From sequence record JN849462.1: a stretch of 64,000 nucleotides of DNA; one strand, 5' to 3'. A model generated the notes under the pieces. That model saw nothing but the letters and a program-made list of their open reading frames with translations, did not search any database and had not been told where the DNA came from. A program made the translations under genes and the position numbers. The first letter of the stretch is position 1, and every line of letters begins with the position of its first letter. Below, piece by piece: positions 31,653-60,321 of this stretch.

Positions 31653-31660
31653 TATAAATA
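31653..31660 (+). promoter_or_regulatory. Consensus T4 late promoter TATAAATA
   Basis: Exact match immediately after the terminator. Confidence 0.8.
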
Positions 31661-31683: not shown

Positions 31684-32565
31684 ATGATTATATTCGAAGA
31701 CATTAATCCGCTTTGTGAAGCATTTGATCGTCCAGCACCATACAAATGGGATTCTATGTACAACGAAGCCCGATTTACGGTTGGGAACGTGCAGTATGTC
31801 GCGTTTATCAAAGATAATGACACAGCAAGAGGTTTAAGTCTGTATGTGGCATTTCAGCGTCGTGATAACGCAACTGGTCAATGGACTCACTCACTTGCTA
31901 AAGGCTCGCCGAAAGACGCAATGACGGTATTGAGCACAATACTGGCAGCAACATTTGACAAGGCATCAAAAGTTGAACCGAATGAAATTACATTCAGTGC
32001 ATTTCGTGACGCAGATGACGAAGACGCAAATAAGCGTTTTAGGCTGTACAAGCGTATGGCTGAGCGATACGCAAAGCAAATGAATTACACAGTTCATATC
32101 ACTGGTAATAGCTTCACACTAACAAACAACAATCCACCTAAGATCAGACGACTCCACAATGACGGCATTCACAAAGAAGATGAACTTACATACGTAAATT
32201 TCCCTGCTTGTAATGCATTTACATGGGCGAAGATTTTCTGGCTTGACAATGACGGCGATTACATCAAACTTACATTACCGCACGGTCGTATTCACATTGT
32301 GAGAAAATCAAGTGACGTAATTGAAATCGAAGCAATTACACCGAAAGGTCGTTTTGACAATCTAGATTCAGATGAGATTTGGATGTCGATGTTATCTGAT
32401 ATTAAAGTGAAAGCTAGAGGCGGAAGAACATTTACTATATCAGAGAAAGGCGCGATTTTAGATGCGGGTGATATGATTTTGTGTGAGCAAGGTACGTTTT
32501 ATTACCTAAGTTCTGAAGATGATTTCAAAGAAATCTGGGGGTATGAAATCGACTCGATTGAATAA
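31684..32565 (+). CDS. Late hypothetical protein, candidate internal head protein
   Basis: Own late promoter and terminator; MIIFEDINPLCE. Confidence 0.75.
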   Translation: MIIFEDINPLCEAFDRPAPYKWDSMYNEARFTVGNVQYVAFIKDNDTARGLSLYVAFQRRDNATGQWTHSLAKGSPKDAMTVLSTILAATFDKASKVEPNEITFSAFRDADDEDANKRFRLYKRMAERYAKQMNYTVHITGNSFTLTNNNPPKIRRLHNDGIHKEDELTYVNFPACNAFTWAKIFWLDNDGDYIKLTLPHGRIHIVRKSSDVIEIEAITPKGRFDNLDSDEIWMSMLSDIKVKARGGRTFTISEKGAILDAGDMILCEQGTFYYLSSEDDFKEIWGYEIDSIE

Positions 32566-32595: not shown

Positions 32596-34260
32596 TCATG
32601 GTGTCAGAGGACTACGTTCTTTCACTTTGCGGTCTTCGTCGATTTCAATATCAACAACTCGCATGAAGTTAGCAACTTGCGCTAACTCACTCAAACGTTC
32701 CTGCTTTTTGTAAGCAGACAGGACGCCGCTTTTCGATGAATTGTCTTTGGCTTTCAAGCGAATCACCGCATCGAATTCTGATAATTGAACAACGTCGGCT
32801 TCGAACATCGTATTACGGTTGATGATGAAATCACAATCGCCTTTCTTCCCGTATTTGCCTGGTGCTAAAACAGGTAACCCGTCAGACTCAATAACAAACA
32901 CAACGTTCAGTTTTCTGTCAGATTCGAGCATATCACGCATAATTGATTTGCTATTCTTGCTCGTCGCGTTGACGATTGTTTTCGCGCTAGATTCAACAAA
33001 GTCACATACAACAAATGGATCAGTTGATGATGTGATGAACGCAGTTGAAACGAACGCGCCAGATTCAAGAATCGAGCCGACACGTTTGCTAGACATTTCA
33101 CAACCACGATATAGCGTAACGCCATTCGACACCTTACCAGCTTCATAGAAAGCTCGATCTAAGCGAGAAATTGCATCCCTAACCTTTTCATCACCAGTTC
33201 CGTGAACTAACTCTTCATTGACCTTCCACGAATAACGAGACGCAGAATAGCGAGAAATTGCAGCTTGAGTAAGAGAAGATAGACCAGCATATGAATCTTC
33301 TTGCATCATTTGCAACGATAATTGGTCATATTGCTTCTCAAACGCACGTGAGCGGGCTTTTAACAGTGCGGAGCATACTTCACTAATCAAATTAGATTTA
33401 ACGCCCTCTGAACGTGCTGAAGCGATATATGGGTTCATTCGTTCTGCTACATCAACAAGGTCGATGTTCATATCAACAATTGCTTGAGCAGCGTTAGCCA
33501 ATTTAGTTAGACCGTCAGTTGCTGCCGCTTCTGTTAATTGCTGCTTGATAGATGCACTGACCCGCGCTTCCGTTTGTGGCATTTGCAGAATTTGATTCGG
33601 GACGCGAACGGCAGGGTTTTCTTCTACCCATTGACCTAGAACATCATCTTCATAATCATCATAGCCAGCATCGGCAGTCACGATGATTGTTTTCTTGCTT
33701 GAAATGTCAGTCTCTTTCGCCATTTTAGCAGCAAGAATATTGATTGTTTCTTCGGTTGCTTCGACGAGTTTATCAGCGTCATAGCCGGGTTTCGTGATCA
33801 CGAAGAAGCTGAAATCTTCAGCCATTTCATTATCACCGACGTTCATGATTTTAGTCGTTTCGCAGCCGTATCGAAGTTTCTTGAACAGCGTTTTAACACG
33901 CATGTCGAACATTTTACCGCTACCGATCTTTTGAATACGCATAGACACAGCGTTGGCACGTGTTTTCAACATGAAACTTTGGATCAATTTAACCAATGTT
34001 TCTTGAAACTTTTCTTGGTCTCCCATGTCACGGATGGTTAATCCGCCTTTTTTGCCTCGCATTGCTGAGACAGTACAGAACCACGAACGTTTTCCACGAT
34101 TTCCGATGTCTGATTTTGTTTTAGTTGTGAACGAAACTACAACGTCACGAGCTTCGCCTTTCATATCGATCACAAAGAATTTGTTTTCTTTGGTCGAGCG
34201 AGCCGGATAGTAGTCGTACGTTGCGCTCATGTTTTCAGTTAATTGTTGAAATCCAATCAT
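32596..34260 (-). CDS. alt: Alt-like ADP-ribosyltransferase
   Basis: TLYRG and TSST ART motifs; N-terminus like T4 Alt (AVSMRIQK); late-like promoter; DCD in place of ExE. Confidence 0.75.
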   Translation of the reverse strand: MIGFQQLTENMSATYDYYPARSTKENKFFVIDMKGEARDVVVSFTTKTKSDIGNRGKRSWFCTVSAMRGKKGGLTIRDMGDQEKFQETLVKLIQSFMLKTRANAVSMRIQKIGSGKMFDMRVKTLFKKLRYGCETTKIMNVGDNEMAEDFSFFVITKPGYDADKLVEATEETINILAAKMAKETDISSKKTIIVTADAGYDDYEDDVLGQWVEENPAVRVPNQILQMPQTEARVSASIKQQLTEAAATDGLTKLANAAQAIVDMNIDLVDVAERMNPYIASARSEGVKSNLISEVCSALLKARSRAFEKQYDQLSLQMMQEDSYAGLSSLTQAAISRYSASRYSWKVNEELVHGTGDEKVRDAISRLDRAFYEAGKVSNGVTLYRGCEMSSKRVGSILESGAFVSTAFITSSTDPFVVCDFVESSAKTIVNATSKNSKSIMRDMLESDRKLNVVFVIESDGLPVLAPGKYGKKGDCDFIINRNTMFEADVVQLSEFDAVIRLKAKDNSSKSGVLSAYKKQERLSELAQVANFMRVVDIEIDEDRKVKERSPLTP

Positions 34261-36002: not shown

Positions 36003-36242
36003 ATGATAACGATATACACAATTCCTAACTGTGACGGTTGTCGTCACGCTATCGCCCTCTGTAAGTTCAAACACGTTCCGTATACTGTAATCGAGTTACA
36101 GTCGCAGACTGACATCGACCAATTACATCAAAAGCTTGGTGATAATCGCAATATTCGCGTTCCTCTTGCTATGCATGGTGACACATACATCGGTCACCTG
36201 CCTGAATTGAAGAAATGGGTTGATGAACAGACGTATAAATAA
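36003..36242 (+). CDS. Glutaredoxin
   Basis: PNCDGC CxxC, RVP, YIG. Confidence 0.8.
   Translation: MITIYTIPNCDGCRHAIALCKFKHVPYTVIELQSQTDIDQLHQKLGDNRNIRVPLAMHGDTYIGHLPELKKWVDEQTYK
36234..36241 (+). promoter_or_regulatory. Consensus late promoter TATAAATA
   Basis: Exact match upstream of capsid-fold gene. Confidence 0.8.
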
Positions 36243-36300: not shown

Positions 36301-37197
36301 ATGACTGTATCTAATAGTAACGGTTTACCAGACATTGTTACTGTTCAAAAACGACTATATCCGCTGATCTTCACGGAAATCGTTTCTGAACAGCCAACAA
36401 AGCAACCCGTTGCAACTGCTTACGGCTTTAAAGCTGTACCTGAAGCTGATGACGGCAGCGGCTGGACACAATTCGGGTTTAGACTTGATCGTTGGTATGC
36501 TCAAGTTGAATCTTCAAAAATGAAGACTGAAATCTCTCTTGAAACGCTGCAAGATATGCAAGCACTTGGTGTTAGTAATTCAGTGATCGTAGACTCACTA
36601 GCTGACCAAATTGCCGATGAAATCAATACGTCGATCATAAGTGCGTTGAATAGTATTTCAACTGTTGGTACTGCACTAACCCTGACGGGTAATACTGATT
36701 TTGAAAAAGGTCAAGATCTTTATACGAAAGTACATCTAGCAGCGTCTGAAATTGAAAAAACAACTGGTTGTAAAGGCACATATGTCGTTGCTGGTGGTAA
36801 ATGTTTCGGTTATTTGACTGGTTGTGGTGTTGTACAGCGAGTTGGCGAATCTGACGTTTACAAAGCATGGTCTGGTTTATACATCGTACACGACAAATAC
36901 GCAACAAGCGATTACGTGACTGTAGGTGTTAAGAAAGACATGGGTGATTATGAAATCTCAAGTCTAGTATTCAGCCCGTATCAATTCGACCAAGCGAATG
37001 ACGGCGCGATTGCTTATCAATACAAGGGCACTGACCCGAAATCATTCCACCCTGTGTATGGTGTTATTGCTCGTTACGCACTAACTGTTCCGCCACTAGA
37101 AGACAATCAGACTGGTGCAGTTGAGATTGATTGGTCGAACTTAGGCGCGCTTGCTAATAGCTCAAAGCTTTCATACACATACGCAGTAACAGTATAA
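36301..37197 (+). CDS. 24: gp23/gp24-family capsid-fold protein (probable vertex protein gp24)
   Basis: FRLDRW..SKMKTEISLETLQDM..DQIADEINTSII resembles the gp23/24 core; FSPY; late promoter. Confidence 0.7.
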   Translation: MTVSNSNGLPDIVTVQKRLYPLIFTEIVSEQPTKQPVATAYGFKAVPEADDGSGWTQFGFRLDRWYAQVESSKMKTEISLETLQDMQALGVSNSVIVDSLADQIADEINTSIISALNSISTVGTALTLTGNTDFEKGQDLYTKVHLAASEIEKTTGCKGTYVVAGGKCFGYLTGCGVVQRVGESDVYKAWSGLYIVHDKYATSDYVTVGVKKDMGDYEISSLVFSPYQFDQANDGAIAYQYKGTDPKSFHPVYGVIARYALTVPPLEDNQTGAVEIDWSNLGALANSSKLSYTYAVTV

Positions 37198-37205
37198 GGT
37201 GTGAC

Positions 37206-37718
37206 ATGAAAAATCATTATGTAGATAATAAAGCTCTATACGCATCACTATGCGAATGGAAAGACGAAATGAATAAGAATCCTGATGCGACAATCCCAGT
37301 ACCTGATGTGGTCGCGATTAGCATCATGAAGATTAGCGAGAACCTGTCTCGCCGTTACAACTTTAGTGGTTACACTGCTACGTGGAAAGAAGAAATGATT
37401 GGTGACGCAATCGAACATTGCTTGCGTTACATCAAAAATTTCGATACTGATAAGTACAACAATCCACACGCTTACATCACTCGTATCTGTTTCAATGCGT
37501 TCGTGCAACGCATTAAGAAAGAAAGAAAAGATACAGCGATTAAATATAAAGTATTCTTATGTGATTCGTCTAACTACACAGTTGAAGGCGAAGAGACTGA
37601 TTTCGAGTTTCTTCAGCAAATGTTAGAGCGTGTCAATTCTTACGAGTCTGGCAAAACGGCTAAAGCTCAACCAGATGAACAGAAAGAACCACTTAACTTA
37701 CAGAAATTTTACGATTAA
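37206..37718 (+). CDS. 55: Late sigma factor gp55
   Basis: NHYVDNK.LY, RYNFSGYT..WKEEMIGDAIE, NPHAYITRICFNAFVQRIKKE. Confidence 0.96.
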   Translation: MKNHYVDNKALYASLCEWKDEMNKNPDATIPVPDVVAISIMKISENLSRRYNFSGYTATWKEEMIGDAIEHCLRYIKNFDTDKYNNPHAYITRICFNAFVQRIKKERKDTAIKYKVFLCDSSNYTVEGEETDFEFLQQMLERVNSYESGKTAKAQPDEQKEPLNLQKFYD

Positions 37719-37727
37719 GGAATTAAC

Positions 37728-39173
37728 ATGTTAGGTAACTTTGACTCATTTCTGAGTGAAAATCGCCGTCAAACTCAGGGTGGAAAAATCTACCCTAAGT
37801 TTGGTCAAGTTATTGTTGAGCTAGGCACTGCATCTACTGAGTTCAGCAAAGGCAAAGGCGTTGAAACAACTATCGGCATGATGGAGAAGGCAAATGAGCT
37901 TAAATCTATCATGAACACTAAACTGGCTGAAGATAAAAACGTCGATGAGAAACATTTCGACATCAATCTGAGCGAGAACGTAAGCACGGTTAACCTGCTT
38001 ATGGAAAACGAATTCTTGGCGCTGCCAGCTCATGAGCTACAGCAAGTCAAATCAATGATCATGTGTACTGAAGCACGTCTTCCTAGCATCGTGATTAAAG
38101 GTGGTTCATTGGATCAAGTTGTTGCTGAAGCAACGAAACTAGGCTACAAGAAAAGTGACATTCACGTTGTTTTCCCGATGCGTGAAATGAAAATCAATCT
38201 TGCTGACTCTGACAAGCTTGTTATTGAATCTCTATCAATTGACGACAATTCAGCGTCTGAGATTCTTTCAATGGCTGAAAACATCGAGCTTGGTGACGTT
38301 TATGTGACTGTAGAATCGGTTGATTCTAAGGCTGAACTGTCTGAAATCACTGAACTGAAGATTAAATCTGGTAAAAATGCGCTGACACTAGCTGCACTTA
38401 ACCGCAAGATCATGGATCAGTTTATCGTGAAAGAAGCGAAAGAAGTTTCATATGCACGTGAGCGCAAAGAAGACACTGGTCTCCCAATGCTTGAAGGGTT
38501 CAAGGCATACGATCTGAAACAGAACATCACCATGATTGAACATGCTCAGAACGCATTCACAAAAGAGATTACAGTAGCTCCGCTATCTTCGACTGCGTGG
38601 CAAAATCTTGTTGATGTTAAAGAAGCTTACTTCGATAACGGTTGGAAACTGAAGCACAACAATACAAGCATCGTTCTAACAAACGCTGAACACGCAATGC
38701 GTGCTGGTCGTGTTTGTGAAGAATATCGAGTCGAGCTATCTGAAGCAGGTTATCCTCTTCTTGATATGATCGCAATGATGGAAAGCAAGGGCATGACTCG
38801 CTTTGATTGTAAATCATTTGCTGAAGCAATGATGAAATTCGACGGCTGTGTTACGCCAGAGCGCCAGACTGTGACTGCATTTGTTACTGAATCTGCTAGT
38901 AATCGCGTATTTCACCCGAATATTATGTCAAGCCTACGTCCTGTGACCGAAATGGTTGATGATGTTGACAGTCTAATTCGTGCGCTTGCTAATGATCAGT
39001 TCAGCACGTTCAAAATCGGACAATCATTCTCTGAATCAATGCTTGACCAAGAAACGCTATACTCTATGATGGAAAGCATTGTTTCTGATGGTGTTGATGT
39101 ATCAGTGGACGGGACTTTGATTGAATTCAAAGTGAATGCAACCAATTACCTAATCAATATCGACATAAAATAA
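37728..39173 (+). CDS. Large hypothetical protein, candidate internal head protein with degenerate P-loop-like N-terminus
   Basis: MLGNFDSFLSE; GGKIYPKFGQVIVELG. Confidence 0.7.
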   Translation: MLGNFDSFLSENRRQTQGGKIYPKFGQVIVELGTASTEFSKGKGVETTIGMMEKANELKSIMNTKLAEDKNVDEKHFDINLSENVSTVNLLMENEFLALPAHELQQVKSMIMCTEARLPSIVIKGGSLDQVVAEATKLGYKKSDIHVVFPMREMKINLADSDKLVIESLSIDDNSASEILSMAENIELGDVYVTVESVDSKAELSEITELKIKSGKNALTLAALNRKIMDQFIVKEAKEVSYARERKEDTGLPMLEGFKAYDLKQNITMIEHAQNAFTKEITVAPLSSTAWQNLVDVKEAYFDNGWKLKHNNTSIVLTNAEHAMRAGRVCEEYRVELSEAGYPLLDMIAMMESKGMTRFDCKSFAEAMMKFDGCVTPERQTVTAFVTESASNRVFHPNIMSSLRPVTEMVDDVDSLIRALANDQFSTFKIGQSFSESMLDQETLYSMMESIVSDGVDVSVDGTLIEFKVNATNYLINIDIK

Positions 39174-39181
39174 GGTGAAAC

Positions 39182-39829
39182 ATGAAACAATTTTGTAATT
39201 TTTTAGCTGAAGTTCAGAAATACAGTTCAGCGGCTACGTCGATTCGCGGTAAAGAAGTTGCTGCATTGGTTAAATTGTTCAAGTCAGGCATGTTCGTGCC
39301 TGGCGGAACAGCACTTGACTACGGCGCGGGCAAATACGGTCGTAATGCTGAATTTCTTCGCAGTGAAGGCATTCGCACTTACGCATACGACAAATTCAAT
39401 GGGACATCGGCTGATGGTTGGAACGCAGTTAGCTTAACTATCCCGAATGGTGAGACATTCGATACTGGCTTCACGTCATACGTATTGAACGTTGTTCCTG
39501 AAGAAGTCGAAGCAGAAATCATACGTGATGTTGAGTCTCGTACACGCGGTAAAGTGTTCCATATTACACGCGGTACTGACATCACTCAGACTGTATTCAA
39601 CGTAATCAGCGGTAAGAGCAAGAATGACGTAATGATGCAATTCATTGCTCAAGAATATCCAGAGATTTACGGTCAGATTGTCGCGAACGGTGGGACTAAA
39701 GAATTGGCTAAAGAGATTGCAACTCGTGGAGTTGTAACAGCTAAAGACAGTTTCCAACGTATTCCAGACCTATCGAAATACGGTTACAAGAAATCTGGTT
39801 CAGGCGCTTCAGTCGTTTGGACAAAATAA
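39182..39829 (+). CDS. Class I SAM-dependent methyltransferase with CTS-like N-terminus
   Basis: ALDYGAGK motif I, YAYD, FTSYVLNVV; MKQFCNFLAE. Confidence 0.75.
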   Translation: MKQFCNFLAEVQKYSSAATSIRGKEVAALVKLFKSGMFVPGGTALDYGAGKYGRNAEFLRSEGIRTYAYDKFNGTSADGWNAVSLTIPNGETFDTGFTSYVLNVVPEEVEAEIIRDVESRTRGKVFHITRGTDITQTVFNVISGKSKNDVMMQFIAQEYPEIYGQIVANGGTKELAKEIATRGVVTAKDSFQRIPDLSKYGYKKSGSGASVVWTK

Positions 39830-39846
39830 TTTGAAATTATTTGAAT

Positions 39847-39926
39847 AAAAGGGTTGCTTCGGCAACCCTTTTTGCGTATTATAGCTACATCGAAACGAGA
39901 TACGAACACAAAGAGAGAACGTTATG
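39847..39926 (+). promoter_or_regulatory. Class A terminator/promoter cassette
   Basis: aaaagggTTGC-ttcg-gcaaccctttt; 17 nt; TATTAT 39877; near-identical copy at 55207. Confidence 0.8.
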
Positions 39927-40184
39927 ATGATTACTGAATACCTACGCAATAATACAGTTCGCGAAATGCTAGATTGCCCTGCTACTTCGCTTGCATTCTG
40001 GTCACAAGAATTCATGATCATCCCTGATGAAGACCTAACTTTTGTTGAAAACGATGAAAACGTTCTAATCAAGATGAACGAAATCGAAGTTGTTGTGCCG
40101 TACAATATGACGCTTGAAGTTCTTGAGCAAATGTTCGGTGACGCACTAAGTGAACATGTTAGAAAGATTAAAGAACGTGTTTAA
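39924..40184 (+). CDS. Early hypothetical protein
   Basis: Follows cassette. Confidence 0.7.
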   Translation: MMITEYLRNNTVREMLDCPATSLAFWSQEFMIIPDEDLTFVENDENVLIKMNEIEVVVPYNMTLEVLEQMFGDALSEHVRKIKERV

Positions 40185-40208
40185 CATCGGTTTATCTCAT
40201 CCTATAAT
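40179..40208 (+). promoter_or_regulatory. Class B promoter
   Basis: G-TTTAAC, 17 nt, TATAAT 40203. Confidence 0.65.
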
Positions 40209-40231
40209 ACTCAAACATTGAAGGAAATATT

Positions 40232-40690
40232 ATGATCTACATTGAAACAAGCAACATCCTTTCTGATGACACTCTCGGCTTTGCAATGGCTGGCGCGCCT
40301 CAAGTCGATAAACTTGAGAAAAAAGAGCGTGACAATGTGCTTAACAAAGCTGTTGAAGTCAAGCTCTACGAACGTCTTCCATCGACTGCTGTACTTGATT
40401 TTCTCTTGAATCAAAAAATTCCCTTCATCGCCGTACTGAGCAAAGTAGAAGTTATTGCTGAACAGCAACGTGCGTGGTTTGATGCAATTGGCAAGCACTT
40501 GAATATTGATGTGATGTACACAGATTTTCAAGAAGTCGAGCACAATCTCGATACGCTGTTGATTGCTGAAGATCGACATGAACTGAAACGTCACGCTCAA
40601 AATAACGGTAGAATTCTACCATTCACAACTGAAACACAATTTCAATTCATTATCGACCATCTATCTTCGGTCGACAATAAGGAGCAGTAA
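40232..40690 (+). CDS. Hypothetical protein
   Basis: AAGGA RBS; first gene of the operon leading to 47/46. Confidence 0.7.
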   Translation: MIYIETSNILSDDTLGFAMAGAPQVDKLEKKERDNVLNKAVEVKLYERLPSTAVLDFLLNQKIPFIAVLSKVEVIAEQQRAWFDAIGKHLNIDVMYTDFQEVEHNLDTLLIAEDRHELKRHAQNNGRILPFTTETQFQFIIDHLSSVDNKEQ

Positions 40691-41040
40691 TGCAAGAGAA
40701 GCCAGATTTACTCAAAGACGACGAAATTGTTGATGTAGTTGAAGATCAAGAAGTTCTTGACTATCTTGATGAACTACAAGCTCAACGTCGTGCGCTTGTC
40801 GAGAAAGAAGCACATCGTCGTATCAAGAAAAACTCGCGTGAGATTAAACGTCTGCATAAACACGCTGAAAAGTGTCTAATCGAAGGTAACAAAGCGGGTT
40901 ACGTCTACGCAATCGGCAAACTTCGTTCTATTACTGGTCAGACAGTTGGTGACGATGTACTTGAAACGTTATGGAAAACTAGTCGTGAGCAAGTACTAAC
41001 AATCGCACGTTCATTTGCAGAAGCGAAAGCAGGTCAATAA
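40690..41040 (+). CDS. T4 a-gt.4-like protein
   Basis: RRIKKNSREIKRLHKHAEK..Y.YAIGKLR pattern. Confidence 0.7.
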   Translation: MQEKPDLLKDDEIVDVVEDQEVLDYLDELQAQRRALVEKEAHRRIKKNSREIKRLHKHAEKCLIEGNKAGYVYAIGKLRSITGQTVGDDVLETLWKTSREQVLTIARSFAEAKAGQ

Positions 41041-41504
41041 TGGACATTAAATCAGGCGCTGGTTATCCAGCCAGTGCGCTGTCAAACTTTGCGCCTCACG
41101 CATTCGTTGTGCGTGGTGTTGAGTGTGCTTCTATGGAAGGGTTTCTTCAGTCATTGAAGTTCAAAAACCCAGAAATGCAACGTGAAGTCTGCAAACTTGT
41201 GGGTAAAGTTGCTAAAGCACGCGGTGCGAAGAAAAACTGGCAACGCACTCAGACACTTTATTGGCAAGGTGAGCCGATTCAGCGTGCTTCGGTTGGGTAT
41301 CAAACGTTGCTCGATGATGCATACGCTGCATTAGCTCAGAACGTGAAATTTCAAAAGGCACTGCTTGCTACTGGTAAAGCTACCCTTACACATTCAATCG
41401 GGCGTAAGAAGCAGGCAGAGACGGTTTTAACTGTACAAGAATTCTGTAGCCGATTGACAGTGATTCGGGAACATTTGCAGAATGAAGCTGATGAATGTAG
41501 TTAA
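41040..41504 (+). CDS. NADAR-family protein (T4 gp30.3-like)
   Basis: ALSNFAPH.F..G..C.SMEGFLQSLK, TLYWQG. Confidence 0.8.
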   Translation: MDIKSGAGYPASALSNFAPHAFVVRGVECASMEGFLQSLKFKNPEMQREVCKLVGKVAKARGAKKNWQRTQTLYWQGEPIQRASVGYQTLLDDAYAALAQNVKFQKALLATGKATLTHSIGRKKQAETVLTVQEFCSRLTVIREHLQNEADECS

Positions 41505-41994
41505 ATTAATGATTCGTGCGATTGCTCGTGCGAAGAAAACAGACAAGCCTATCGTATACATTGACATGGACAACGTGCTGGTTGACTTTCAGAGTGGAAT
41601 AGATGCTCTTTCTATCTGGGAAAAGAATCAGTATGAGGGTCGATATGACGAATGTCCGGGTATTTTCGCTCATATGAAGCCGATGAAAGGTGCGATTGCT
41701 GCATTTGAAGTGTTGAACAAACACTTTGATTGCTATATACTGTCTACCGCCCCGTGGGATAATCCCGGGTCATGGCAAGATAAGCGTCTGTGGGTTGAAC
41801 GTTACTTGGGCAAAGGTGCTTACAAGCGACTGATCTTGTCACATCACAAGCAGTTAAACTTCGGTCATTATCTCATCGACGACCGCACGAAAAACGGTGC
41901 AGGTGAGTTCATGGGCGAACACATTCACTTTGGCACAGACGAATTCCCTGACTGGTTTTCGGTTGTGACTTATCTTACGAGTGAGAACAAATGA
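41482..41994 (+). CDS. 5'(3')-deoxyribonucleotidase (HAD)
   Basis: YIDMDNVL, ILSTAPW, LIDDR. Confidence 0.85.
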   Translation: MKLMNVVKLMIRAIARAKKTDKPIVYIDMDNVLVDFQSGIDALSIWEKNQYEGRYDECPGIFAHMKPMKGAIAAFEVLNKHFDCYILSTAPWDNPGSWQDKRLWVERYLGKGAYKRLILSHHKQLNFGHYLIDDRTKNGAGEFMGEHIHFGTDEFPDWFSVVTYLTSENK

Positions 41995-43031
41995 AAGTAG
42001 CATTGCTAGGTGACTTGCATATCGGCATCAAAGATGACGACATGTGGGTACAAAATTACCAGCGCAAGTTCTTCGACTTTATGTTCGCAGAACTAGAAGA
42101 GCGCGGTGTAAAAGAAATAATTCAACTCGGTGACTGGTTTGACGTACGTCGAGGCGCAACGCAAGAAACACTGATGTTTCAACGAACGTATCTGAATGGC
42201 ATGTTGAAAGGTCACAATACACACGTTCTAGTGGGTAACCATGACATGCACTTGCGTGAATGCATTGTACCGAATACTCCGTATGAAGTATTGAGCGTTG
42301 TACCAGACGTTACAATCTACGAGCACCCGACGACGGTTGAGTTTGATGGTGTTAAAATTGACATAATTCCGTGGATTTGTAAAGAAAATGCAGTCGAAAT
42401 CGACGAATTCATTAAAAATTCAACGTCTGAATATTGTGTCGGTCACTTTGAGTTGAACGGGTTTGAATTTCATAAAGGTCAAAAAGCAACTGGCTGTCTT
42501 GATGCTGGTTTCTTGAAGAAATACAAACAAGTTTGGTCTGGACACTTTCATACTCAGTCTGAAGCGGGCAATATCAAGTATCTCGGTACGCCGTATACAT
42601 TGACTCTTGCAGACGCTGACGATAAGCGTGGTTTTTGGTTGTTCGATACTGAAACACACGAAATGGAGTTCATTGAGAACCCCGATTGTTGGCACACCAA
42701 GCTGTATTTTGACGCTGAAACGTTTGACGCGAAAACAATCCCGTCATATGAAAATCGCAACGTCAAGATCATCGTTGAACGACGTTCAAGTGACAAGCGT
42801 GAAATCTCTTTTGATGTAGTCGAAGATCGCATTGCGCAAATTGCACATGCGTGTCAGACTCTCGATGAGCTAGACATCAAAAAAGACGTAGCAGATGACA
42901 TCAAATCTATCAAAGATATTGATGATTATGTTGCTGAATATGCAGATACGCTAGACGAATCGACTGAAGTCAAGTCAAAAGTCAAAGCAATCTTCTCGGC
43001 GCTTCGTGCTGAAGCTCAGGAGAATGCGTAA
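41991..43031 (+). CDS. 47: Recombination endonuclease gp47 (Mre11-like)
   Basis: GDLHIG, GDWFD, GNHD, GHFEL, SGHFHT, YLGTPY. Confidence 0.95.
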   Translation: MKVALLGDLHIGIKDDDMWVQNYQRKFFDFMFAELEERGVKEIIQLGDWFDVRRGATQETLMFQRTYLNGMLKGHNTHVLVGNHDMHLRECIVPNTPYEVLSVVPDVTIYEHPTTVEFDGVKIDIIPWICKENAVEIDEFIKNSTSEYCVGHFELNGFEFHKGQKATGCLDAGFLKKYKQVWSGHFHTQSEAGNIKYLGTPYTLTLADADDKRGFWLFDTETHEMEFIENPDCWHTKLYFDAETFDAKTIPSYENRNVKIIVERRSSDKREISFDVVEDRIAQIAHACQTLDELDIKKDVADDIKSIKDIDDYVAEYADTLDESTEVKSKVKAIFSALRAEAQENA

Positions 43032-47949: not shown

Positions 47950-48438
47950 ATGGACATTTTTGAACTACTCGCGAAAGGTGAAGAAGCTGAGAAAGCAGCG
48001 CAGAACGAACAGGCTGAGTTCGAAGCTGAAATGAAGGCGGCGAAAGTCAAAAAACTCTCGCCATTTGACTTTCTCAATAGCTTGTACATGAAAGACTACA
48101 TCATGAACGATGATGTGAAGAGTCAATATCAAGCATTCATGGTGAATCGCGGTATGTCGAATGGCATCGACACAGTGGTTCATGCGTACATCATGGATCA
48201 AGTCGGTAGTAAACTGCCACCTGATATGCAATATGATTACTATTATCATGCAGTTCGAAAAGGTAAGCGATACAACTCGTGGGCGAAAGAAACGAAATAC
48301 GAAGCAGTTGATATGATCATGGAAATCTATCAAATCAACAAGCAAAAAGCTATTGATGTGCTTCATCGTCTGACCGCTGATGAGCTTGAGCAGTTGACTA
48401 CATGGTTTGAATCCCGAACAGGGGGCTTAACACGCTAA
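47950..48438 (+). CDS. 62: Clamp loader small subunit gp62
   Basis: MVNRGMS, QYDYY..VRKGKRY..WAK; synteny. Confidence 0.85.
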   Translation: MDIFELLAKGEEAEKAAQNEQAEFEAEMKAAKVKKLSPFDFLNSLYMKDYIMNDDVKSQYQAFMVNRGMSNGIDTVVHAYIMDQVGSKLPPDMQYDYYYHAVRKGKRYNSWAKETKYEAVDMIMEIYQINKQKAIDVLHRLTADELEQLTTWFESRTGGLTR

Positions 48439-48472
48439 TAAATATGTTTTTATTATGCTGTTGAGATTAATC

Positions 48473-48853
48473 ATGGACATTATTAACAAACTTGAAATTC
48501 AATTACCAGATGACGATGCCTTTCTAAAGATTCGCGAGACTCTAACGCGAATTGGCATCGCCAATAACAAAACAAACACTCTGTACCAGTCATGTCATAT
48601 TCTTCAGAAGCGTGGCGTTTACTTTCTGGTGCACTTCAAAGAGCTTTTAGCACTTGACGGTCGTTGTGTGGAAATCACTGCTGAAGACATTGAACGACGC
48701 AACAACATCGCCAAGTTACTCGAAGATTGGAACTTGTGTAAGATTGCTCATCCTGAGTCACATGAATTCACTGGTGACAATAAATTCCGCGTGATTTCGT
48801 TCCGCGATTCTAAAAACTGGAATCTAAGGTACAAATATCGCATAGGATCTTAA
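48473..48853 (+). CDS. regA: Translational repressor RegA
   Basis: FLKIRETLTRIGIAN, LYQSCHILQKRG.YF.VHFKELL.LDG. Confidence 0.96.
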   Translation: MDIINKLEIQLPDDDAFLKIRETLTRIGIANNKTNTLYQSCHILQKRGVYFLVHFKELLALDGRCVEITAEDIERRNNIAKLLEDWNLCKIAHPESHEFTGDNKFRVISFRDSKNWNLRYKYRIGS

Positions 48854-48855
48854 AA

Positions 48856-49482
48856 TCACTTAGACTTGCAATTGTCAAAGTGGTGACGAGTCATTGCACC
48901 GCCCTTTTTGCCTTGCTTTCCGCAATGCGGGCACGTGACAACGGGGAGATTCAAAAGAGCCTCGCGTATTTTCTGCGAGTGTTCTTTTGATTTCGAGACA
49001 CCTTTTCGTGATTTTGACATTTTTTCTTTTGTTGTATCACTAGTGGGTTCTCTATTCTCCCATGCCTTTTTAAGGTTTTCACGATGTTCTTCGCTGAATG
49101 GGGCACGTTTGATACCTGTCAGTGTTTGAGAAATGGCTTTTGCATGAGCTTCACGTGCATAACGATAGCTGTGCGAATTGTGTCGATTATCGTTGGCTAG
49201 TCGATGCCACGCATGTGCCATTTTGTTATTGTTATAAATTTTAAACAGGAGCCAGTGGACTAAGAAGTGTTCTCTTGCAGTGAGTACTACAAGATTACTC
49301 TTTTCTTCTGAATCCATGTCAAATACGTATTCATCACGTTCTATACTCTTGGTATATCTACACATAGACTTAGGTAATATGTGATGGAGTTCTACGTAGA
49401 CTGGTGCAGTTGACTTCGTCCACGCTCTTTCGACTGCTCGATTTATAATTTCGTCGTGTATTCTTTTGTAATTCATATGCAT
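48856..49482 (-). mobile_element. Free-standing HNH homing endonuclease (Mob-like) with NUMOD3-type repeats
   Basis: ELHHILPKS..NLVVLTAREHFLVH; SEEHRENL, TKEKMSK; CPHC; probable start 49476. Confidence 0.85.
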
Positions 49483-49500
49483 TCCTAAAAGGTTTCTTTG

Positions 49501-49508
49501 TATTTATA
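49501..49508 (-). promoter_or_regulatory. Consensus late promoter TATAAATA for the HNH gene
   Basis: tatttata on + strand. Confidence 0.75.
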
Positions 49509-49550
49509 ACGGAATAGTCGAAAATTCGGGTTTTATTTGAGGAATACACT

Positions 49551-50069
49551 ATGAACAACGAACGTTTTCAAGAACTACTACAATTCGGCGGTGAATTCGA
49601 AGCTGCTGTTGAGCCTAAGATAGCAAGAGTGTTCTGTCACGCTGACCCAGACGCAATGCTAATCAATACGGCAACATCCAAAACAGACCAGAAACATAAG
49701 CGCGGTCAACGCCTCATGTACTGTCAAGACACATCCGCAAGCTTTATGCTACCTGACGTGTTTGTTTTCACAAAAGGCAAACAATTCTGCGTAGAAATCA
49801 AATGCAAGAAACGCTTTTACCGACACACTGATGGTAAATTATATGGCGTAATCGACACCTACAAAGTTCAAGAGTATCGCGACGCAGTTCGCCACATGGG
49901 ATTTGATGGTATTTTCTATGTGTTCGGTGATGAAGAAACACGCTCGGTTTATTTTGCAAAAGACGACCCGATTGACATCAAAATACCTGCGTTTCGCGAA
50001 TACAAAAACAAAAAAGGTGAGTTTAAAGCCTGGCTAATCGACGATTTGCACTTTTTAGGGAAATGGTAG
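49551..50069 (+). CDS. Putative PD-(D/E)XK endonuclease
   Basis: GGEFE..LPDVFVF..CVEIKCK. Confidence 0.6.
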   Translation: MNNERFQELLQFGGEFEAAVEPKIARVFCHADPDAMLINTATSKTDQKHKRGQRLMYCQDTSASFMLPDVFVFTKGKQFCVEIKCKKRFYRHTDGKLYGVIDTYKVQEYRDAVRHMGFDGIFYVFGDEETRSVYFAKDDPIDIKIPAFREYKNKKGEFKAWLIDDLHFLGKW

Positions 50070-50098
50070 TTTAGAACTTCATTTTTCTCTGATAGCAT
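50069..50098 (+). promoter_or_regulatory. Class B promoter for gene 43
   Basis: G-TTTAGA, 17 nt, TAGCAT 50093. Confidence 0.55.
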
Positions 50099-50129
50099 AA
50101 CAGCACGTAACAACTTGTGAAGGAATAAC

Positions 50130-52682
50130 ATGACAATCTATACATCAATTGAACGAATCGGCTCTAATCTTTGCGAACGCTACATCGACGACGACGGTTT
50201 TGAGCATATGCGCAAAGTGAAATACGAACCGACGTTGTTCATTCACTGCAATGAAGAAACTGGATACAAAGACATTTACGGTCGCAACTGTCGCCCTAAG
50301 ATGTTTGACACAATGGGCGAAGCGAGTAAGTACATCAAAGACACGAAGCAGTTCAACGAAGTGCTTGGTATGGATGATTTCATCGTTACGTATATCTCAG
50401 ATGTGTATAAGCAGCGTGAATTCGATATGTCTCGCATTCGCATTGCTAACATAGATATTGAAACTCCGTCTGTGGAGTTCCCTGAAGCAGCACATGCGCC
50501 AGTGCCAATCACGTCAATTGGTCACTATGACAACATCGACGATAAATTCTACGTTTACGGTATCCCGTCAAACACTGAGTGGAAACGCGAAAGCAGCATC
50601 GTTAAGCCAGAGCTTCTAGAAAAGACTGTTTACATTCGATGTGCTACAGAAAAAGAGCTACTTGTTAAGTATCTTCAATTCTGGCGTGAGAAAACACCAG
50701 CAATCGTAACAGGTTGGAACATTGAATCGTTCGATATGCCGTACATCGTCAACCGATACAAGAATCTGTTTGGCGAGAAAGTGATGAACAGCTTGTCACC
50801 ATGGGGTAAAGTTCAAGTATCAACTACAGTCAACGACTACGGTCAAGAAATCTGTAAAGTGAACATTCTCGGCGTATCTGAACTCGATTATCTTCAACTT
50901 TACAAGAAATTCACGTATGTGACACGACCATCATATCGTCTAGATTACATCGGTGAAGTTGAGCTTGATGAGAAAAAGGTCGAGTTCGAACAAGCGAACT
51001 ACCTTGAGTTCTATGAGCAAGATTATCAGAACTTCATTGACTACCAGATTCAAGACGTTAACTTGGTTAAGCGCCTAGATGAGAAGCTTCAGCTAATGCT
51101 TTTGACTATCTCTCTAGCGTACTATGCTGGTATCAACTATCAAACGGTATTAGGCACAATCAAGCCGTGGGATGCAATCATCTTTAACAGCTTGAAAGCT
51201 GAGAAGAAGGTTGTTCCGATGATGCGTTCTCACGAAGGTGGACGATTCATGGGTGCGTTTGTTAAAGCGCCTCAAGTGGGTTACCATCGTGGCATTGGCT
51301 CTTTCGACTTGACATCACTATACCCGTCGATTATTCGCGAATGTAACATTTCACCAGAAACAATCGTTGGTCAGCTTGACTACGAAGGGTCTCTTGAAGA
51401 TCGTATCGACAAGATTGTTGAAGGGTTGATCACGTTCCCTGCTGATGAGTTATCAAACAGCGCGAACGGTATGCAGTATCGCAAAGACGTACGCGGCGTG
51501 ATTCCAGTTGAAATTGAGAAAGTTTTCTTCCAGCGTAAAGCGAATAAGAAGAAAGCATTCGAATACGAGCAACAAGCAATCGACATCCAGAAACAGATGG
51601 ATGAACAAGGTGAAACGCCTGAACTGCGTGCAGCGTATGAAGAAGCGAAACATCAAGCGAAGATCTACGACGTACAGCAAATGGCTCGTAAGATTCTTAT
51701 CAACTCACTCTATGGTGCGTTAGGTAACGAATACTTCCGATTCTATGACTTGCGTAACGCTGAAGCAGTAACAGCTTACGGTCAGCTTGCAATCAAGTGG
51801 GTAGCGCGTGACGTGAACATTTGGTTGAACAAAGTTTGTAAGACAACTGACAAAGACTACGTGATTTACGGTGATACCGACTCAATCTACGTTAACTTCG
51901 ATCCGTTGCTTGAACTGACAGGCATCAACAAGCTTGAGGGTGACGACTACACAGACAAATTCGCTAAAGTATGTGAGACTGTTGAAACGAAAGTTATCAA
52001 CCCGTCATACGAAGCACTTCACAAGTACATGAACACGTACGAGCGTCAAATGTTCATGGATCGTGAGGTACTAGCACGTACTGGCTTCTTTATCGCGAAA
52101 AAGCGTTATGCACTTGACGTACAAGATAACGAAGGCATTCGTAAACCGAAGCTGAAAATCATGGGTATTGAGACTCAACGTAGTTCAACACCACCACTTT
52201 GCCAAAAAGGTCTTAAAGAAGCAATTCGTTTGATTCTGCAAGAAGGCGAAGCGAAGCTTCAAGAATTTGTAAAGGGGTATGAGAAAGAGTTCAAGGCAGC
52301 TCCGTATCAAGAAGTGTCATTTGTATCTAGTGCAAACAACATGAACAAATACTCTGATGATAAAGGTAATCCTGGTAAGGGATGTCCGGGTCACGTGAAA
52401 GGCGCGCTGTACTACAACAAGCTTGCTGAAGAGCACGGGTTCGACAAGATCAACGAGGGTGACAAAATCGCTGTTGTGTTCTTGACTCGAAACAAGCACG
52501 GTATTGACCGTATTGCTTACCCGTCTGGCGGCAAACTGCCTGAAGCAATCTCATACTTGATTGAACACGTTGATTACAATCGTCTGTATGAAGATAAGTT
52601 CATCAAACCGTTGAGCGCGATTTCTGAAGCAATTCAGTTCGACTACAAGAAAACAATCACATTGGAGAGTTTCTTTGGCTAA
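50130..52682 (+). CDS. 43: Family B DNA polymerase gp43
   Basis: [45 protein letters not shown]; unsplit. Confidence 0.99.
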
Positions 52683-52983
52683 TGTAGATAAATTTGCAAT
52701 CGGGGGCGCAGAAATGCGCCCTGAGATTGGCGACGTGTGTCGTGACCACTTTCCGACTTCGAGAAATTGGCATGAGGATTGGAACACGACTGCGATTAAT
52801 TACGTGAAATACGAGCGTGATATTCACCTCGACATTTCATCTTGGTACGTAGATGCAGAGAACAATGTTCTATCAATCACGTTGAAAAATGAAGAGCCGT
52901 CGATTCACGGGATGATTGTTCCACCTCGTGTTTGCCTTGACCTGACTAAGGTCAGAGAAATAATCACAGAAATCTTGAAATAA
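52675..52983 (+). CDS. Hypothetical protein
   Basis: TTG start with GGAGAG RBS. Confidence 0.55.
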
Positions 52984-52987
52984 GACG

Positions 52988-53019
52988 TTGACAGTGTGCA
53001 TGAACTCGTGTACACTGTT
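52988..53019 (+). promoter_or_regulatory. sigma70 promoter within an inverted repeat
   Basis: TTGACA, 17 nt, TACACT; acagtgtgca/tgtacactgt arms. Confidence 0.6.
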
Positions 53020-53046
53020 AAAAGACTATTTTGAGAGGAAAAGACA

Positions 53047-54192
53047 ATGACTACACAAGAACTATACAATCATTTGATGACACTGACCGACGACGCTGAA
53101 GGCAAGTTCTTCTTTGCTGATCACATTTCACCGCTCGGTGAGAAACTTCGTGTGTTTAGCTATCACATTGCGTCGTACTCTGACTGGCTGCTGCCGGGTG
53201 CTCTTGAAGCGCGTGGTATCATGTTCCAGCTTGACGAACAAGATAAGATGGTTCGTATCGTGTCTCGCCCGATGGAGAAATTCTTCAATCTGAACGAGAA
53301 TCCCTTTACGATGGATCTTGACTTGACGACTACTGTTCAGCTAATGGACAAAGCTGATGGTTCTTTAATCAGTACGTATCTGACTGGTGAGAACTTCGCG
53401 CTGAAGTCAAAAACAAGCATCTTCTCTGAGCAAGCCGTTGCAGCGAATCGCTACATCAAATTGCCAGAGAATCGCGACTTGTGGGAATTCTGTGACGACT
53501 TAACTCAAGCTGGTTGTACAGTCAACATGGAATGGTGCGCGCCAAATAACCGTATTGTTCTTGAGTATCCAGAAGCGAAGCTGGTCATCTTGAATATTCG
53601 TGACAACGAAACAGGTGATTACGTGAGCTTTGACGACATCCCGCTACCTGCGTTGATGCGTGTCAAGAAGTGGTTAGTTGATGAGTATGACCCTGAAACT
53701 GCACACGCAGACGATTTCGTTGAGAAATTGCGTGCGACTAAAGGCATCGAAGGCATGATCTTGCGCCTAGCAAACGGTCAATCGGTGAAAATCAAGACTC
53801 AGTGGTATGTCGATCTGCACTCGCAAAAAGACTCTGTGAACGTTCCGAAGAAGTTGGTGACAACTATCTTGAACAACAATCACGATGATCTGTATGCGCT
53901 GTTTGCCGACGACAAGCCGACAATCGACCGCATTCGTGAGTTCGATTCTCACGTATCGAAGACTGTATCTGCATCGTTCCACGCTGTAAGTCAGTTTTAC
54001 GTGAAAAATCGACATCTGTCGCGCAAAGATTATGCAATCGCAGGTCAGAAAACACTTAAACCGTGGGAATTTGGCGTAGCAATGATCGCGTATCAGAATC
54101 AAACCGTCGAAGGCGTGTACGAAGCTTTAGTCGGTGCGTATCTGAAGCGACCAGAACTACTCATTCCTGAGAAGTATCTGAATGAGGCATAA
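53047..54192 (+). CDS. rnlA: RNA ligase 1 / tail fiber attachment catalyst
   Basis: EARGIMF, RPMEKFFNLNEN, KADGSLI, EGMIL, KIKTQWY. Confidence 0.95.
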   Translation: MTTQELYNHLMTLTDDAEGKFFFADHISPLGEKLRVFSYHIASYSDWLLPGALEARGIMFQLDEQDKMVRIVSRPMEKFFNLNENPFTMDLDLTTTVQLMDKADGSLISTYLTGENFALKSKTSIFSEQAVAANRYIKLPENRDLWEFCDDLTQAGCTVNMEWCAPNNRIVLEYPEAKLVILNIRDNETGDYVSFDDIPLPALMRVKKWLVDEYDPETAHADDFVEKLRATKGIEGMILRLANGQSVKIKTQWYVDLHSQKDSVNVPKKLVTTILNNNHDDLYALFADDKPTIDRIREFDSHVSKTVSASFHAVSQFYVKNRHLSRKDYAIAGQKTLKPWEFGVAMIAYQNQTVEGVYEALVGAYLKRPELLIPEKYLNEA

Positions 54193-54465
54193 ATGCACCA
54201 CTTTGTATTTCAAAACGGGGAGCCGATGCGAGTCGGCAACCCACAAGAGTTCATAGAAAAATTCAACAAATATTTCCTACCAGAGCTGCAAAAACGATTA
54301 GATGACGACCCGAAAACTCGCGGTGGTCGAATCGTGTATGCGGGCCCTTCTAAAACAGACACTATTCAAGGCATTGATGTTCAAATCATGGACAAAGATG
54401 GTATCGTGTCTACGTTTTACGTGAATGTCTTCACACAGACGTTCAGTCCTGTCTTCTACCAGTGA
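54193..54465 (+). CDS. Hypothetical protein
   Basis: Adjacent ORF with GAGG RBS. Confidence 0.6.
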   Translation: MHHFVFQNGEPMRVGNPQEFIEKFNKYFLPELQKRLDDDPKTRGGRIVYAGPSKTDTIQGIDVQIMDKDGIVSTFYVNVFTQTFSPVFYQ

Positions 54466-54496
54466 TAAATACTCCCGTATGAATAATATGGGAGTA
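54464..54496 (+). promoter_or_regulatory. Late promoter GATAAATA overlapping an RBS-sequestering hairpin
   Basis: tactcccgtat-gaata-atatgggagta. Confidence 0.7.
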
Positions 54497-54501
54497 ATAT
54501 C

Positions 54502-55204: not shown

Positions 55205-55206
55205 AG

Positions 55207-58866: not shown

Positions 58867-60321
58867 ATGAAACTGTTTACTGAATTTTATCAAGAAGTTC
58901 GACTTGACGAAATCTCAGATCGTGCGAATATCGACATTGATTGGGATTGGGGTCATGAGAACGGTACGGGAGAAACTTCGGCGAGATTTGACGCAGCCGG
59001 TGAGAAATTCCAAGTTAGCGTTGACGAGAGCAACCCGGGTTATTTCACAATCACATTCCAGAACTCTAGTGGTTATTCTCAGACTGGTAGAGCGGGACAC
59101 TCTGCGGCTGCTGTATTCTCTGGCGTATTGACGACTTTACGTGAATTCACCGAAACGTACGAAGAAGAAATGGGCATGAAACCATATGAATATGACTTCA
59201 GCGCAGCGTACGAACTACCGAGAAATCACGACTATTACTCGTTGGTTCACAATCGTCGCGAGGCAACTCGTTTAGATGAAGAAAGCAAGAAAAAGCTATT
59301 GAAAGACTTGATTTCTCGCCCTATGCTTTACTACGCACTATCGTTGACGTTTGGTAAAGAATACGGCTATTCAACTGAAATTAGCGACCGTTGGCTTGCT
59401 CGTCTTGCAGGGGGCGCGAATGATTTCCGTTCCGTTCGTAAGAACGTGACTCGAAGCATTCTGTCGATGAATGACAACGACGTTAACCAAGCGTTGATGA
59501 ACATGAGCGGTTCTGTTTCGTTCACTCTTACCAACGAAAACGAACGTCCTAGCAGCTACGACACAGCATTCGGTGGCGGTCCGTCTCTTGAAGACTACGT
59601 TGATGAAGCAGACCAGTACCAAATCGAAGCGTGGATCAATGATGGTCGTGAAGATGAAATCATCGAACATGCTGATTGGCAAACTCTAGTTCGCATTGCG
59701 GAATGGGGTCTGATGCACGATGAACTGATTTTCCATGATGATGAAGACGTTCGAAACGCGGTAATCCGCACAGACTACGAAATGGGCGAGAAACTAGCCG
59801 AATCGCCTGAGTGGGAACATCGTAAACAAGCTGCTGAAAATGGTTTTGGCATTTGGGATCTTGTTCTTGACTCTGACGAAGACGTGCGCGAAGCTGCATG
59901 GGACTGGTCGTTTGAAAATGACGATGCTGATACTCGAATCACATACGCGAAACGCTACGAAGGCAACTTCGGTCGCGCAATGGCTGAAGACGTGTGGGAT
60001 CGCATGATCGACGATTCAGATGACTATGAAGAGCGTCAATACGTAGCTGAACAAGGTTATCGTCTTGAAGAACTTCTAGCAGACCATGACGAAGACGTGC
60101 GTTCTTCTGCAATCAATGCTGTATTCACGGTAATGGGTCTGGATGGTCGAGAAGCGGCTGAGTTCTTGATGGAAAACTCTGAACCTTACCAAGAAGAAGT
60201 GTTTGAATACGCGATTAACGGTAACTTCGGTCCATCTTTCGATGAAGCACTAATCGAAATTGCTGAAGAAAACGGCGTTGATGTTTCTGAGTACAAAGAA
60301 GACGAAGACGAAGACGAATAA
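58867..60321 (+). CDS. Acidic protein with HEAT-like repeats, candidate internal head protein
   Basis: MKLFTEFYQEVRLDE; repeated D.DEDVR motifs. Confidence 0.75.
   Translation: MKLFTEFYQEVRLDEISDRANIDIDWDWGHENGTGETSARFDAAGEKFQVSVDESNPGYFTITFQNSSGYSQTGRAGHSAAAVFSGVLTTLREFTETYEEEMGMKPYEYDFSAAYELPRNHDYYSLVHNRREATRLDEESKKKLLKDLISRPMLYYALSLTFGKEYGYSTEISDRWLARLAGGANDFRSVRKNVTRSILSMNDNDVNQALMNMSGSVSFTLTNENERPSSYDTAFGGGPSLEDYVDEADQYQIEAWINDGREDEIIEHADWQTLVRIAEWGLMHDELIFHDDEDVRNAVIRTDYEMGEKLAESPEWEHRKQAAENGFGIWDLVLDSDEDVREAAWDWSFENDDADTRITYAKRYEGNFGRAMAEDVWDRMIDDSDDYEERQYVAEQGYRLEELLADHDEDVRSSAINAVFTVMGLDGREAAEFLMENSEPYQEEVFEYAINGNFGPSFDEALIEIAEENGVDVSEYKEDEDEDE

Follow-up and report, generated by a model that had tools for sequence, protein, structure and literature searches.

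The stretch of DNA analyzed here, the 64,000 nucleotides of record JN849462.1 referred to below as the window, belongs to Vibrio phage phi-pp2, a giant T4-like phage of the KVP40-like Schizotequatrovirus type. An open reading frame (ORF) on its + strand encodes a protein of 215 residues, and the ORF list, the sequence and the presence of a ribosome-binding site (RBS) all show it to be a real gene (Table 1). The predicted protein is 99.5% identical to its KVP40 counterpart, KVP40.0066 (phrog_14016), which is labelled hypothetical in every annotation; in a megablast comparison, positions 37000-42000 matched phi-pp2 at 100% nucleotide identity with the same coordinates, and KVP40 at 98.8%. Based on the data presented below, we consider it fairly probable that this gene encodes a class I S-adenosylmethionine (SAM)-dependent methyltransferase which a T4-type capsid-targeting leader directs into the phage head.

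The first ten residues of the protein, MKQFCNFLAE, were compared with the N-termini of the T4 internal proteins (IPs), the ipI, ipII and ipIII genes having been located in record NC_000866.4 and translated for this purpose. IPII and IPIII both begin with MKTYQEFIAE, and IPI begins with MKTFKEF. When MKQFCNFLAE is aligned with MKTYQEFIAE without any gaps, five of the ten residues are identical (M1, K2, F7, A9, and E10) and two further positions are conservative (F/Y at position 4 and L/I at position 8), which makes 7/10 similar residues. An earlier note on this DNA described the match as near-perfect: the position-by-position alignment holds, but with five identities and two conservative replacements this wording was too strong. 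The first ten residues of IPIII are known to be enough for capsid targeting, and mutagenesis has shown residues 4 and 7 to be the main determinants of targeting, and residues 8 and 10 those of processing (review of Black's work, PMC9026906). At these four positions, the methyltransferase leader carries F, F, L, and E, respectively, which are all either identical to the T4 residues or conservative replacements. In eight orthologs showing 66-100% identity, position 4 is F or L, position 7 is F or Y, position 8 is always L and position 10 is always E; positions 3, 5, 6, and 9 vary freely. The L8-A9-E10 triplet is the sole L/I-x-E motif present in the methyltransferase protein.

As a control for chance, residues 2-10 encoded downstream of 521 ATG starts of a KVP40-type genome (those preceded by an RBS-like sequence and followed by at least 60 codons) were scored against the T4 IPIII leader using ungapped BLOSUM62 values. 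The methyltransferase leader ranks first among the 521, with a score of 21 vs. a mean of -6.5 (standard deviation 6.6; z about 4.2); by way of a yardstick, the T4 IPI leader scores 24 against that of IPIII. The resemblance to the T4 leader is more than chance. A looser regular expression picks out three ORFs in the KVP40-type genome, namely KVP40.0065, KVP40.0066, and KVP40.0290 (KVP40 genes are designated below by their numbers only).

Data on phage particles are available for a relative. In a study on Schizotequatrovirus phages (ISME J 2025, PMC12028318), particles of phage 6E35-1a were precipitated with polyethylene glycol (PEG) and examined by means of tandem mass spectrometry. The 81%-identical ortholog of the methyltransferase, VP6E351A_0103 (QZI87378.1, Table S8 of that study), has retained the leader (MAKSLNDFLTE, with VQKYSS after it) and was recorded in the particles with 31 and 79 counts in the two replicates (Table S4). 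According to our arithmetic on Table S4, this corresponds to about 2.3 counts per kDa, as compared with 3.7 in the case of the portal and vertex proteins, 2.8 in that of both the Alt-like protein and the tail tube, and 1.0 in that of the prohead protease, the values for cytoplasmic carry-over being at most about 0.45 (dUTPase 0.45, FolE 0.4, NadV 0.34, and ligase 0.02). Other proteins of interest here were also recorded: the 0097 ortholog VP6E351A_0134 (58/109 counts), the 0290 ortholog (18/4), the Alt-like protein (122/233), and the 0058 ortholog (16/61). Of the four proteins chosen by their leader alone, three are in the particle list, the background being about 21% (94 of about 442 proteins), which gives roughly p = 0.03. 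VP6E351A_0103 is not discussed in the study, and the papers on phi-pp2 and PVA8 include no proteomics. The methyltransferase gene is a core gene, present in 18 of the 18 Schizotequatrovirus genomes, with a ratio of nonsynonymous to synonymous substitution rates (dN/dS) of 0.018 (PMC12028318, Table S8). Trypsin would shorten a mature N-terminal peptide that starts with VQKYSS to VQK, which would be too short to be detected.

The leader seems to be separable from the rest of the protein. In the AlphaFold2 model based on a 43-sequence alignment, the mean pLDDT (predicted local distance difference test score) is 89.8, and residues 1-11, with values below 50, form an undocked helix. A natural variant is found on a metagenomic contig (L033) which is syntenic with the phi-pp2 region: it carries alc, a SprT-like gene, an nrdH-sized ORF, genes 24 and 55, 0065, the methyltransferase gene, 30.3, and NT5C, in that order. 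The ATG of the methyltransferase ortholog overlaps the upstream stop codon there (TAATG), and its N-terminus, M-SQKHSS, aligns with V11-QKYSS, so that the ten-residue leader is exactly absent and this variant begins at the predicted cleavage point; the upstream neighbor, the 0065 ortholog, retains its own leader. In all, 5 of 120 family members lack a leader. Between the leader Glu and an invariant T-S-I motif, the spacer measures 8 to 34 residues depending on the family member, and in fusion proteins a similar leader is carried at the N-terminus of the fusion itself, a long way from the methyltransferase domain. The leader pattern fits 30 of the 120 family members vs. 3 of the 521 genomic starts, and 49 of the 120 when a shorter variant is included; in a more diverse, partly fragmentary set of representatives, it fits about 10%. 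Both the model and the sequence comparisons support the idea that the leader acts as a detachable module lying outside the fold.

In the methyltransferase body, the glycine loop LDYGAGK pointed out in the earlier note as SAM motif I is indeed present at residues 45-51, and its core is invariant in 43 relatives. The residues showing complete conservation in these relatives include D46, G48, A49, and G50 in motif I, D70 after strand 2, G79, F93-D94, L-N-V at 102-104, H127, R130, and Q192-R193. Methyltransf_23 (PF13489) was matched by 36 of the 43 relatives, some of which pass its gathering score (28.8-32.5 bits vs. a cut-off of 27 bits), and TehB by 6 of them. When the model was compared with the PDB using Foldseek, 322 matches were obtained at E<=0.001, and all those among the matches listed are class I SAM-methyltransferases, including CysG, DhpI, TehB, ChlM, toxoflavin N-methyltransferase, PKMT1, and CypM; as far as the model goes, the nearest solved folds are those of small-molecule, peptide, and protein methyltransferases. 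The fold matches in BFVD were likewise AdoMet-MTase proteins. A profile search of the 43-relative alignment against the PDB sequences yielded nothing better than E 0.45, and it was the fold comparison alone that proved informative. A class I SAM-methyltransferase fold of the Rossmann-like, seven-strand kind is supported for this body by the conserved residues and by the predicted structure.

A search of 1.84 billion representatives at E<=1e-30 yielded 131 clusters of the family, and no relative was found in a pattern-seeded scan of 185,579 species-representative cellular genomes: judging from these sequence searches, it looks virus-restricted. The fusion partners occurring in the family (GNAT, DUF5661, and DUF5710) give no firm lead on the substrate. 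Distant relatives show no conservation of genomic context (one contig is clearly T4-like, others not clearly so), and their neighboring genes provide no firm lead on the target either. On one of these contigs, which is not obviously T4-like (locus L032, positions 8851-10693), two other small methyltransferase genes (Methyltransf_24 and Methyltransf_23) precede the family member, in a setting of glycan-related genes.

The features of the locus and of the other genes mentioned in this study are listed in Table 1. Genes 24, 55, 0065, and 0066 follow each other at a spacing of 8-9 nt, and the hairpin present downstream of the methyltransferase gene (folding free energy -16.3 kcal/mol, z -3.8 vs. 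shuffled sequences) was missed by a consensus terminator scanner. The gene 24 product shows no L/I-x-E motif within its first 27 residues and is described in the KVP40 annotation as being cleaved by gp21; any processing site it may have therefore differs from the short N-terminal one of T4 gp24.

Table 1. Positions of the methyltransferase gene, its parts and the other features discussed (window coordinates unless stated otherwise)
Feature	Position	Strand	Basis or remark
Leader-bearing methyltransferase gene	39182..39829 (stop codon included)	+	KVP40.0066 homolog, phrog_14016; ORF list
Putative capsid-targeting leader MKQFCNFLAE, codons 1-10, with protease motif L-A-E at its end	39182..39211	+	Comparison with T4 IPII/IPIII
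Predicted mature enzyme, residues 11-215, 22.4 kDa (23.6 kDa when uncleaved), isoelectric point (pI) 9.1	39212..39826	+	AlphaFold model, fold matches, PF13489 in relatives
Motif I LDYGAGK, SAM-binding glycine loop, residues 45-51	39314..39334	+	Alignment of 43 relatives
SYVLNV, residues 99-104, just after strand 4	39476..39493	+	Alignment, secondary structure
RBS AAGGTG	39172..39177	+	4 nt 5' of the methyltransferase ATG; read from the sequence
Likely terminator of the 24-55-0065-0066 block: 11-bp G+C-rich hairpin with a U-run after it	39847..39872	+	Folding
T4-type late-promoter box TATAAATA	36234..36241	+	60 nt upstream of gene 24
Head vertex protein gene (gene 24), opening the block	36301..37197	+	KVP40 annotation, ORF coordinates
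Gene 55 (late sigma factor)	37206..37718	+	phrog_234 at E 1.6e-58; KVP40 annotation
KVP40.0065 homolog, phrog_14490, 481 residues, leader MLGNFDSFLSE	37728..39173	+	Directly upstream of the methyltransferase gene
Exact late box TATAAATA	31653..31660	+	24 nt upstream of the KVP40.0058 homolog
KVP40.0058 homolog, 293 residues, unknown function, N-terminus MIIFEDINPLCE	31684..32565	+	Late box 24 nt upstream
Alt-like ADP-ribosyltransferase, 554 residues, leader MIGFQQLTE (ending in L-x-E)	32596..34260	-	Annotation in phi-pp2 and relatives
KVP40.0097 homolog, phrog_13195, 484 residues, leader MKLFTEFYQE	58867..60321	+	Second-best T4-leader match in the genome
KVP40.0290, phrog_11974, 372 residues, leader MKNLKSFMEE	KVP40 NC_005083.2 156073-157191 (locus L025 26073-27191), outside the window

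Similar leaders were found on 0065, 0097, 0290, and the Alt-like protein, which show no detectable similarity to each other. The possibility that 0065, 0097, and 0290 might be paralogs, in which case the shared leader would be trivial, was rejected: 0065 shows no similarity to either 0097 or 0290 beyond the leader. The leader of 0065 is kept in the 6E35-1a and L033 orthologs, and the protein contains nine L/I-x-E motifs; it may be a core protein that undergoes degradation and expulsion, or else it may simply stay out of the particle. A weak HEAT-repeat match was obtained with 0097. Just upstream of the 0097 homolog, after a hairpin, there is a late box with one mismatch (TCTAAATA). This homolog starts at position 58867 in phi-pp2 vs. 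58233 in KVP40, i.e., 634 bp further along, which indicates that an insertion or deletion distinguishes the two genomes within about 48000-58900, in agreement with the insertions and deletions reported in the phi-pp2 paper. In the case of 0290, a weak match with the PARP catalytic domain was observed (E 1.3e-4, below the cut-off), and this protein may be a second packaged ADP-ribosyltransferase, the Alt-like protein being annotated as an RNA polymerase ADP-ribosyltransferase. The head-core module of KVP40 is as complete as that of T4, consisting of genes 20, 67, 68, 21, 22, and 23, plus inh. KVP40 gp21 is a full-length Peptidase_S77 (E 1.5e-104), that is, a prohead protease of the T4 type, and the N-termini of gp21, gp22, and gp68 are likewise short stretches of the hydrophobic-x-E kind.

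The exact late box occurs four times in the window, vs. 1.7 occurrences expected. No terminator-like site was detected on the + strand between the box at 36234 and the hairpin, and the layout of this interval fits late co-transcription of the methyltransferase gene with head gene 24, as far as can be judged from promoter and terminator patterns. A search of the literature turned up no transcriptome for a KVP40-like phage.

The course of events which we propose is as follows. The gene would be transcribed along with gene 24, which encodes the head vertex protein, and the promoter used would probably be the late one at 36234. The ten-residue leader, with its hydrophobic residues at positions 4 and 7, would dock the protein on the prohead scaffolding core in the manner of T4 IPIII. 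A protease of the gp21 family would then cut after L8-A9-E10, freeing the basic enzyme, which would be kept in the head with the DNA. The T4-like leader and the presence of a close ortholog in particles suggest that the enzyme is probably injected along with the DNA upon infection, as occurs with the internal proteins of T4 and with its Alt, and that it methylates some target. This target might be a host protein, an RNA or a small molecule modified before any phage gene is expressed, DNA being unlikely. It is a tentative proposal that the injected methyltransferase modifies one specific host component within seconds of DNA entry; the candidate targets include a defense protein, RNA polymerase, the translation apparatus, and a small signaling or defense metabolite.

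Several points weigh against a methyltransferase loaded into the head by its leader. The virion mass spectrometry is that of the 81%-identical relative and not of phi-pp2, and its protein counts are silent on the position of the N-terminus. The phi-pp2 methyltransferase itself falls below every Pfam and NCBIfam threshold, and the TM-scores (template-modelling scores) of the PDB fold matches are modest (0.35-0.52). By our estimate, the looser leader pattern would turn up about three times by chance in the genome, so that the weight rests on the specific score and not on the loose pattern. The evidence for late expression is one 8-mer box, and sigma-70-like matches, occurring at chance frequency, are also present upstream. 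Other points would be accounted for if the gene product were an ordinary cytoplasmic phage methyltransferase, its likeness to the T4 leader being coincidental and the particle signal resulting from lysate carry-over: the 6E35-1a particles were PEG-precipitated, not gradient-purified, and cytoplasmic proteins are present at low counts, the list holding dUTPase, thymidylate synthase, ligase, SSB, and NadV; the 0065 ortholog is absent from this list despite its similar leader; and only 5/10 leader residues are identical to those of T4. This explanation is nonetheless unlikely, as the counts per kDa of the ortholog are 5- to 100-fold those of the contaminants and close to those of the portal, Alt-like, and tail tube proteins, the leader ranks first among 521 starts, and a recovery of three out of four sequence-picked leader proteins in the particles has a probability of roughly 0.03 of occurring by chance. 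It is rather unlikely, too, that the protein is packaged, the N-terminal helix being intrinsic to the family rather than a cleaved signal, and that either other determinants are responsible for packaging or the leader is retained. The recurrence of leader-like N-termini in the family, even in members located on contigs that are not clearly T4-like, is consistent with this idea, and also counts against a T4-type signal; on the other hand, the low confidence and undocked position of the helix, the five natural members devoid of a leader (one of which starts exactly at V11), the variable length of the linker, the fusion proteins in which a similar leader is kept far from the methyltransferase domain, and the presence of the same leader on unrelated proteins detected in particles all argue for a signal that is separate from the fold.

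The suggestion made in the earlier note that the enzyme might be a DNA methyltransferase marking the phage DNA at packaging or entry, and thus blocking restriction, is very unlikely to be correct. It gains something from the fact that the mature protein is basic and would adjoin the DNA in the head, and from the weak similarity between its SAM-binding region and TIGR04096. However, no (D/N/S)-P-P-(Y/F/W) motif IV exists anywhere in the protein: the segment after strand 4 reads S-Y-V-L-N-V-V-P, and the SYVLNV sequence which had been proposed to occupy the motif IV position of the amino-methyltransferases is present but does not have the (D/N/S)-P-P-(Y/F) form. The 205-residue mature protein leaves no room for a target-recognition domain, none of the six Pfam families matched among the 43 relatives is a DNA methyltransferase, and no DNA methyltransferase occurs in the best 50 of the 322 PDB fold matches; the possibility of a DNA amino-methyltransferase was rejected in view of the motif, the size, the Pfam profiles, and the fold neighbors. 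In addition, another gene of the phage, KVP40.0137, is annotated as encoding a DNA methyltransferase, which is not in the 6E35-1a particle list, and the published nucleoside analysis of 6E35-1a DNA reported only dPreQ1. The idea of a virion-delivered methyltransferase is well supported as regards the fold and the packaging, the latter thanks to the 6E35-1a ortholog, but not as regards DNA modification. The likeness to methyltransferases linked to phosphorothioation has fared in a similarly mixed way: TIGR04096 is the commonest NCBIfam match, found in 22 of the 43 relatives, but it is weak (16-22 bits vs. a cut-off of 150 bits) and covers profile positions 17-87 of 478, i.e., the SAM-binding part only, and membership of this family was rejected on the grounds of score and coverage. 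Nor was any dnd context found for the family, the scan of the 185,579 cellular genomes having yielded no relative and PADLOC no meaningful match. Lastly, a catalytically dead methyltransferase fold serving as a basic internal head protein, which might neutralize the charge of the DNA or bind an inhibitor, would fit in with the basic pI and with the non-enzymatic nature of the T4 internal proteins (PMC3012670), but this is hardly credible in view of the invariance of the SAM-binding determinants and about 20 more residues across relatives showing 36-50% identity, and of the dN/dS value of 0.018.

If a methyltransferase is indeed loaded into the head by its leader, a conserved and strongly constrained SAM-dependent enzyme would add new chemistry to the means by which a phage acts on the cell before any gene expression. 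If a host component is methylated, the enzyme would be the methylation counterpart of T4 Alt, a previously unrecognized pre-loaded counter-defense or takeover enzyme, and one common to a virus-restricted family comprising no fewer than 131 sequence clusters in marine phages. This reading gives a function class to PHROG 14016, which was hypothetical until now, and accounts for a protein which the authors of a published virion proteome listed without comment. It also suggests that a simple N-terminal signature may flag ejected proteins in the KVP40-like phages, such as 0097, the PARP-like 0290, and the Alt-like protein; these phages are of interest for phage therapy in aquaculture.

Among the known systems, the class I methyltransferases of the PF13489 and TehB types share with the KVP40.0066 family the Rossmann-type fold, the glycine loop, an acidic residue which follows strand 2, and an F-D pair on strand 4. 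What sets the family apart is the invariant N-terminal T-S-I motif, the residues H127/R130, and a helical insert in the C-terminal part containing F-Q-R-I-P, and the phi-pp2 protein remains below threshold, its TM-scores to solved structures being at most 0.52. With TIGR04096, the best NCBIfam match for 22 of the 43 relatives, the likeness is confined to the SAM-binding region; the differences lie in the score (about 20 bits vs. 150), the coverage (70 of 478 positions), and the fact that no dnd context or cellular homolog was found. P1 DarB contains a methyltransferase-like domain. As proposed for the protein described here, it is packaged in the head by means of an N-terminal signal, in its case as an anti-restriction protein (PMC9024508), but it is a 250-kDa multidomain protein of a non-T4 phage without any sequence relation to the KVP40.0066 family, and its signal is longer than nine residues, has no known consensus and needs helper Dar proteins.

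The closest parallels are those with T4 itself. The internal proteins IPI, IPII, and IPIII have in common with the methyltransferase a ten-residue leader in which positions 4 and 7 are hydrophobic and positions 8-10 read L/I-x-E, a gp21-family protease and a scaffold, and a basic mature protein, the ortholog of the methyltransferase having been found in particles. The differences are that the mature part here has an enzyme fold which is dissimilar to any IP and that the gene lies in the 24-55 block and not at the IP loci, cleavage and ejection being proposed by analogy. T4 Alt is a head-delivered enzyme acting before phage gene expression, as predicted for the methyltransferase, and the Alt-like protein of the same phage has a similar short leader and an ortholog in particles; Alt, however, transfers ADP-ribose from nicotinamide adenine dinucleotide, the predicted reaction here being methyl transfer from SAM, and it is about 550-680 residues long, vs. 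215 residues here. The known cargo of the T4-type capsid-targeting route consists of the internal proteins, which are restriction inhibitors without enzymatic activity, and a single class of enzymes, the Alt ADP-ribosyltransferases. The methyltransferase may well be a new enzymatic cargo for this route, delivered in the same way as Alt and the internal proteins and endowed with a new chemistry.

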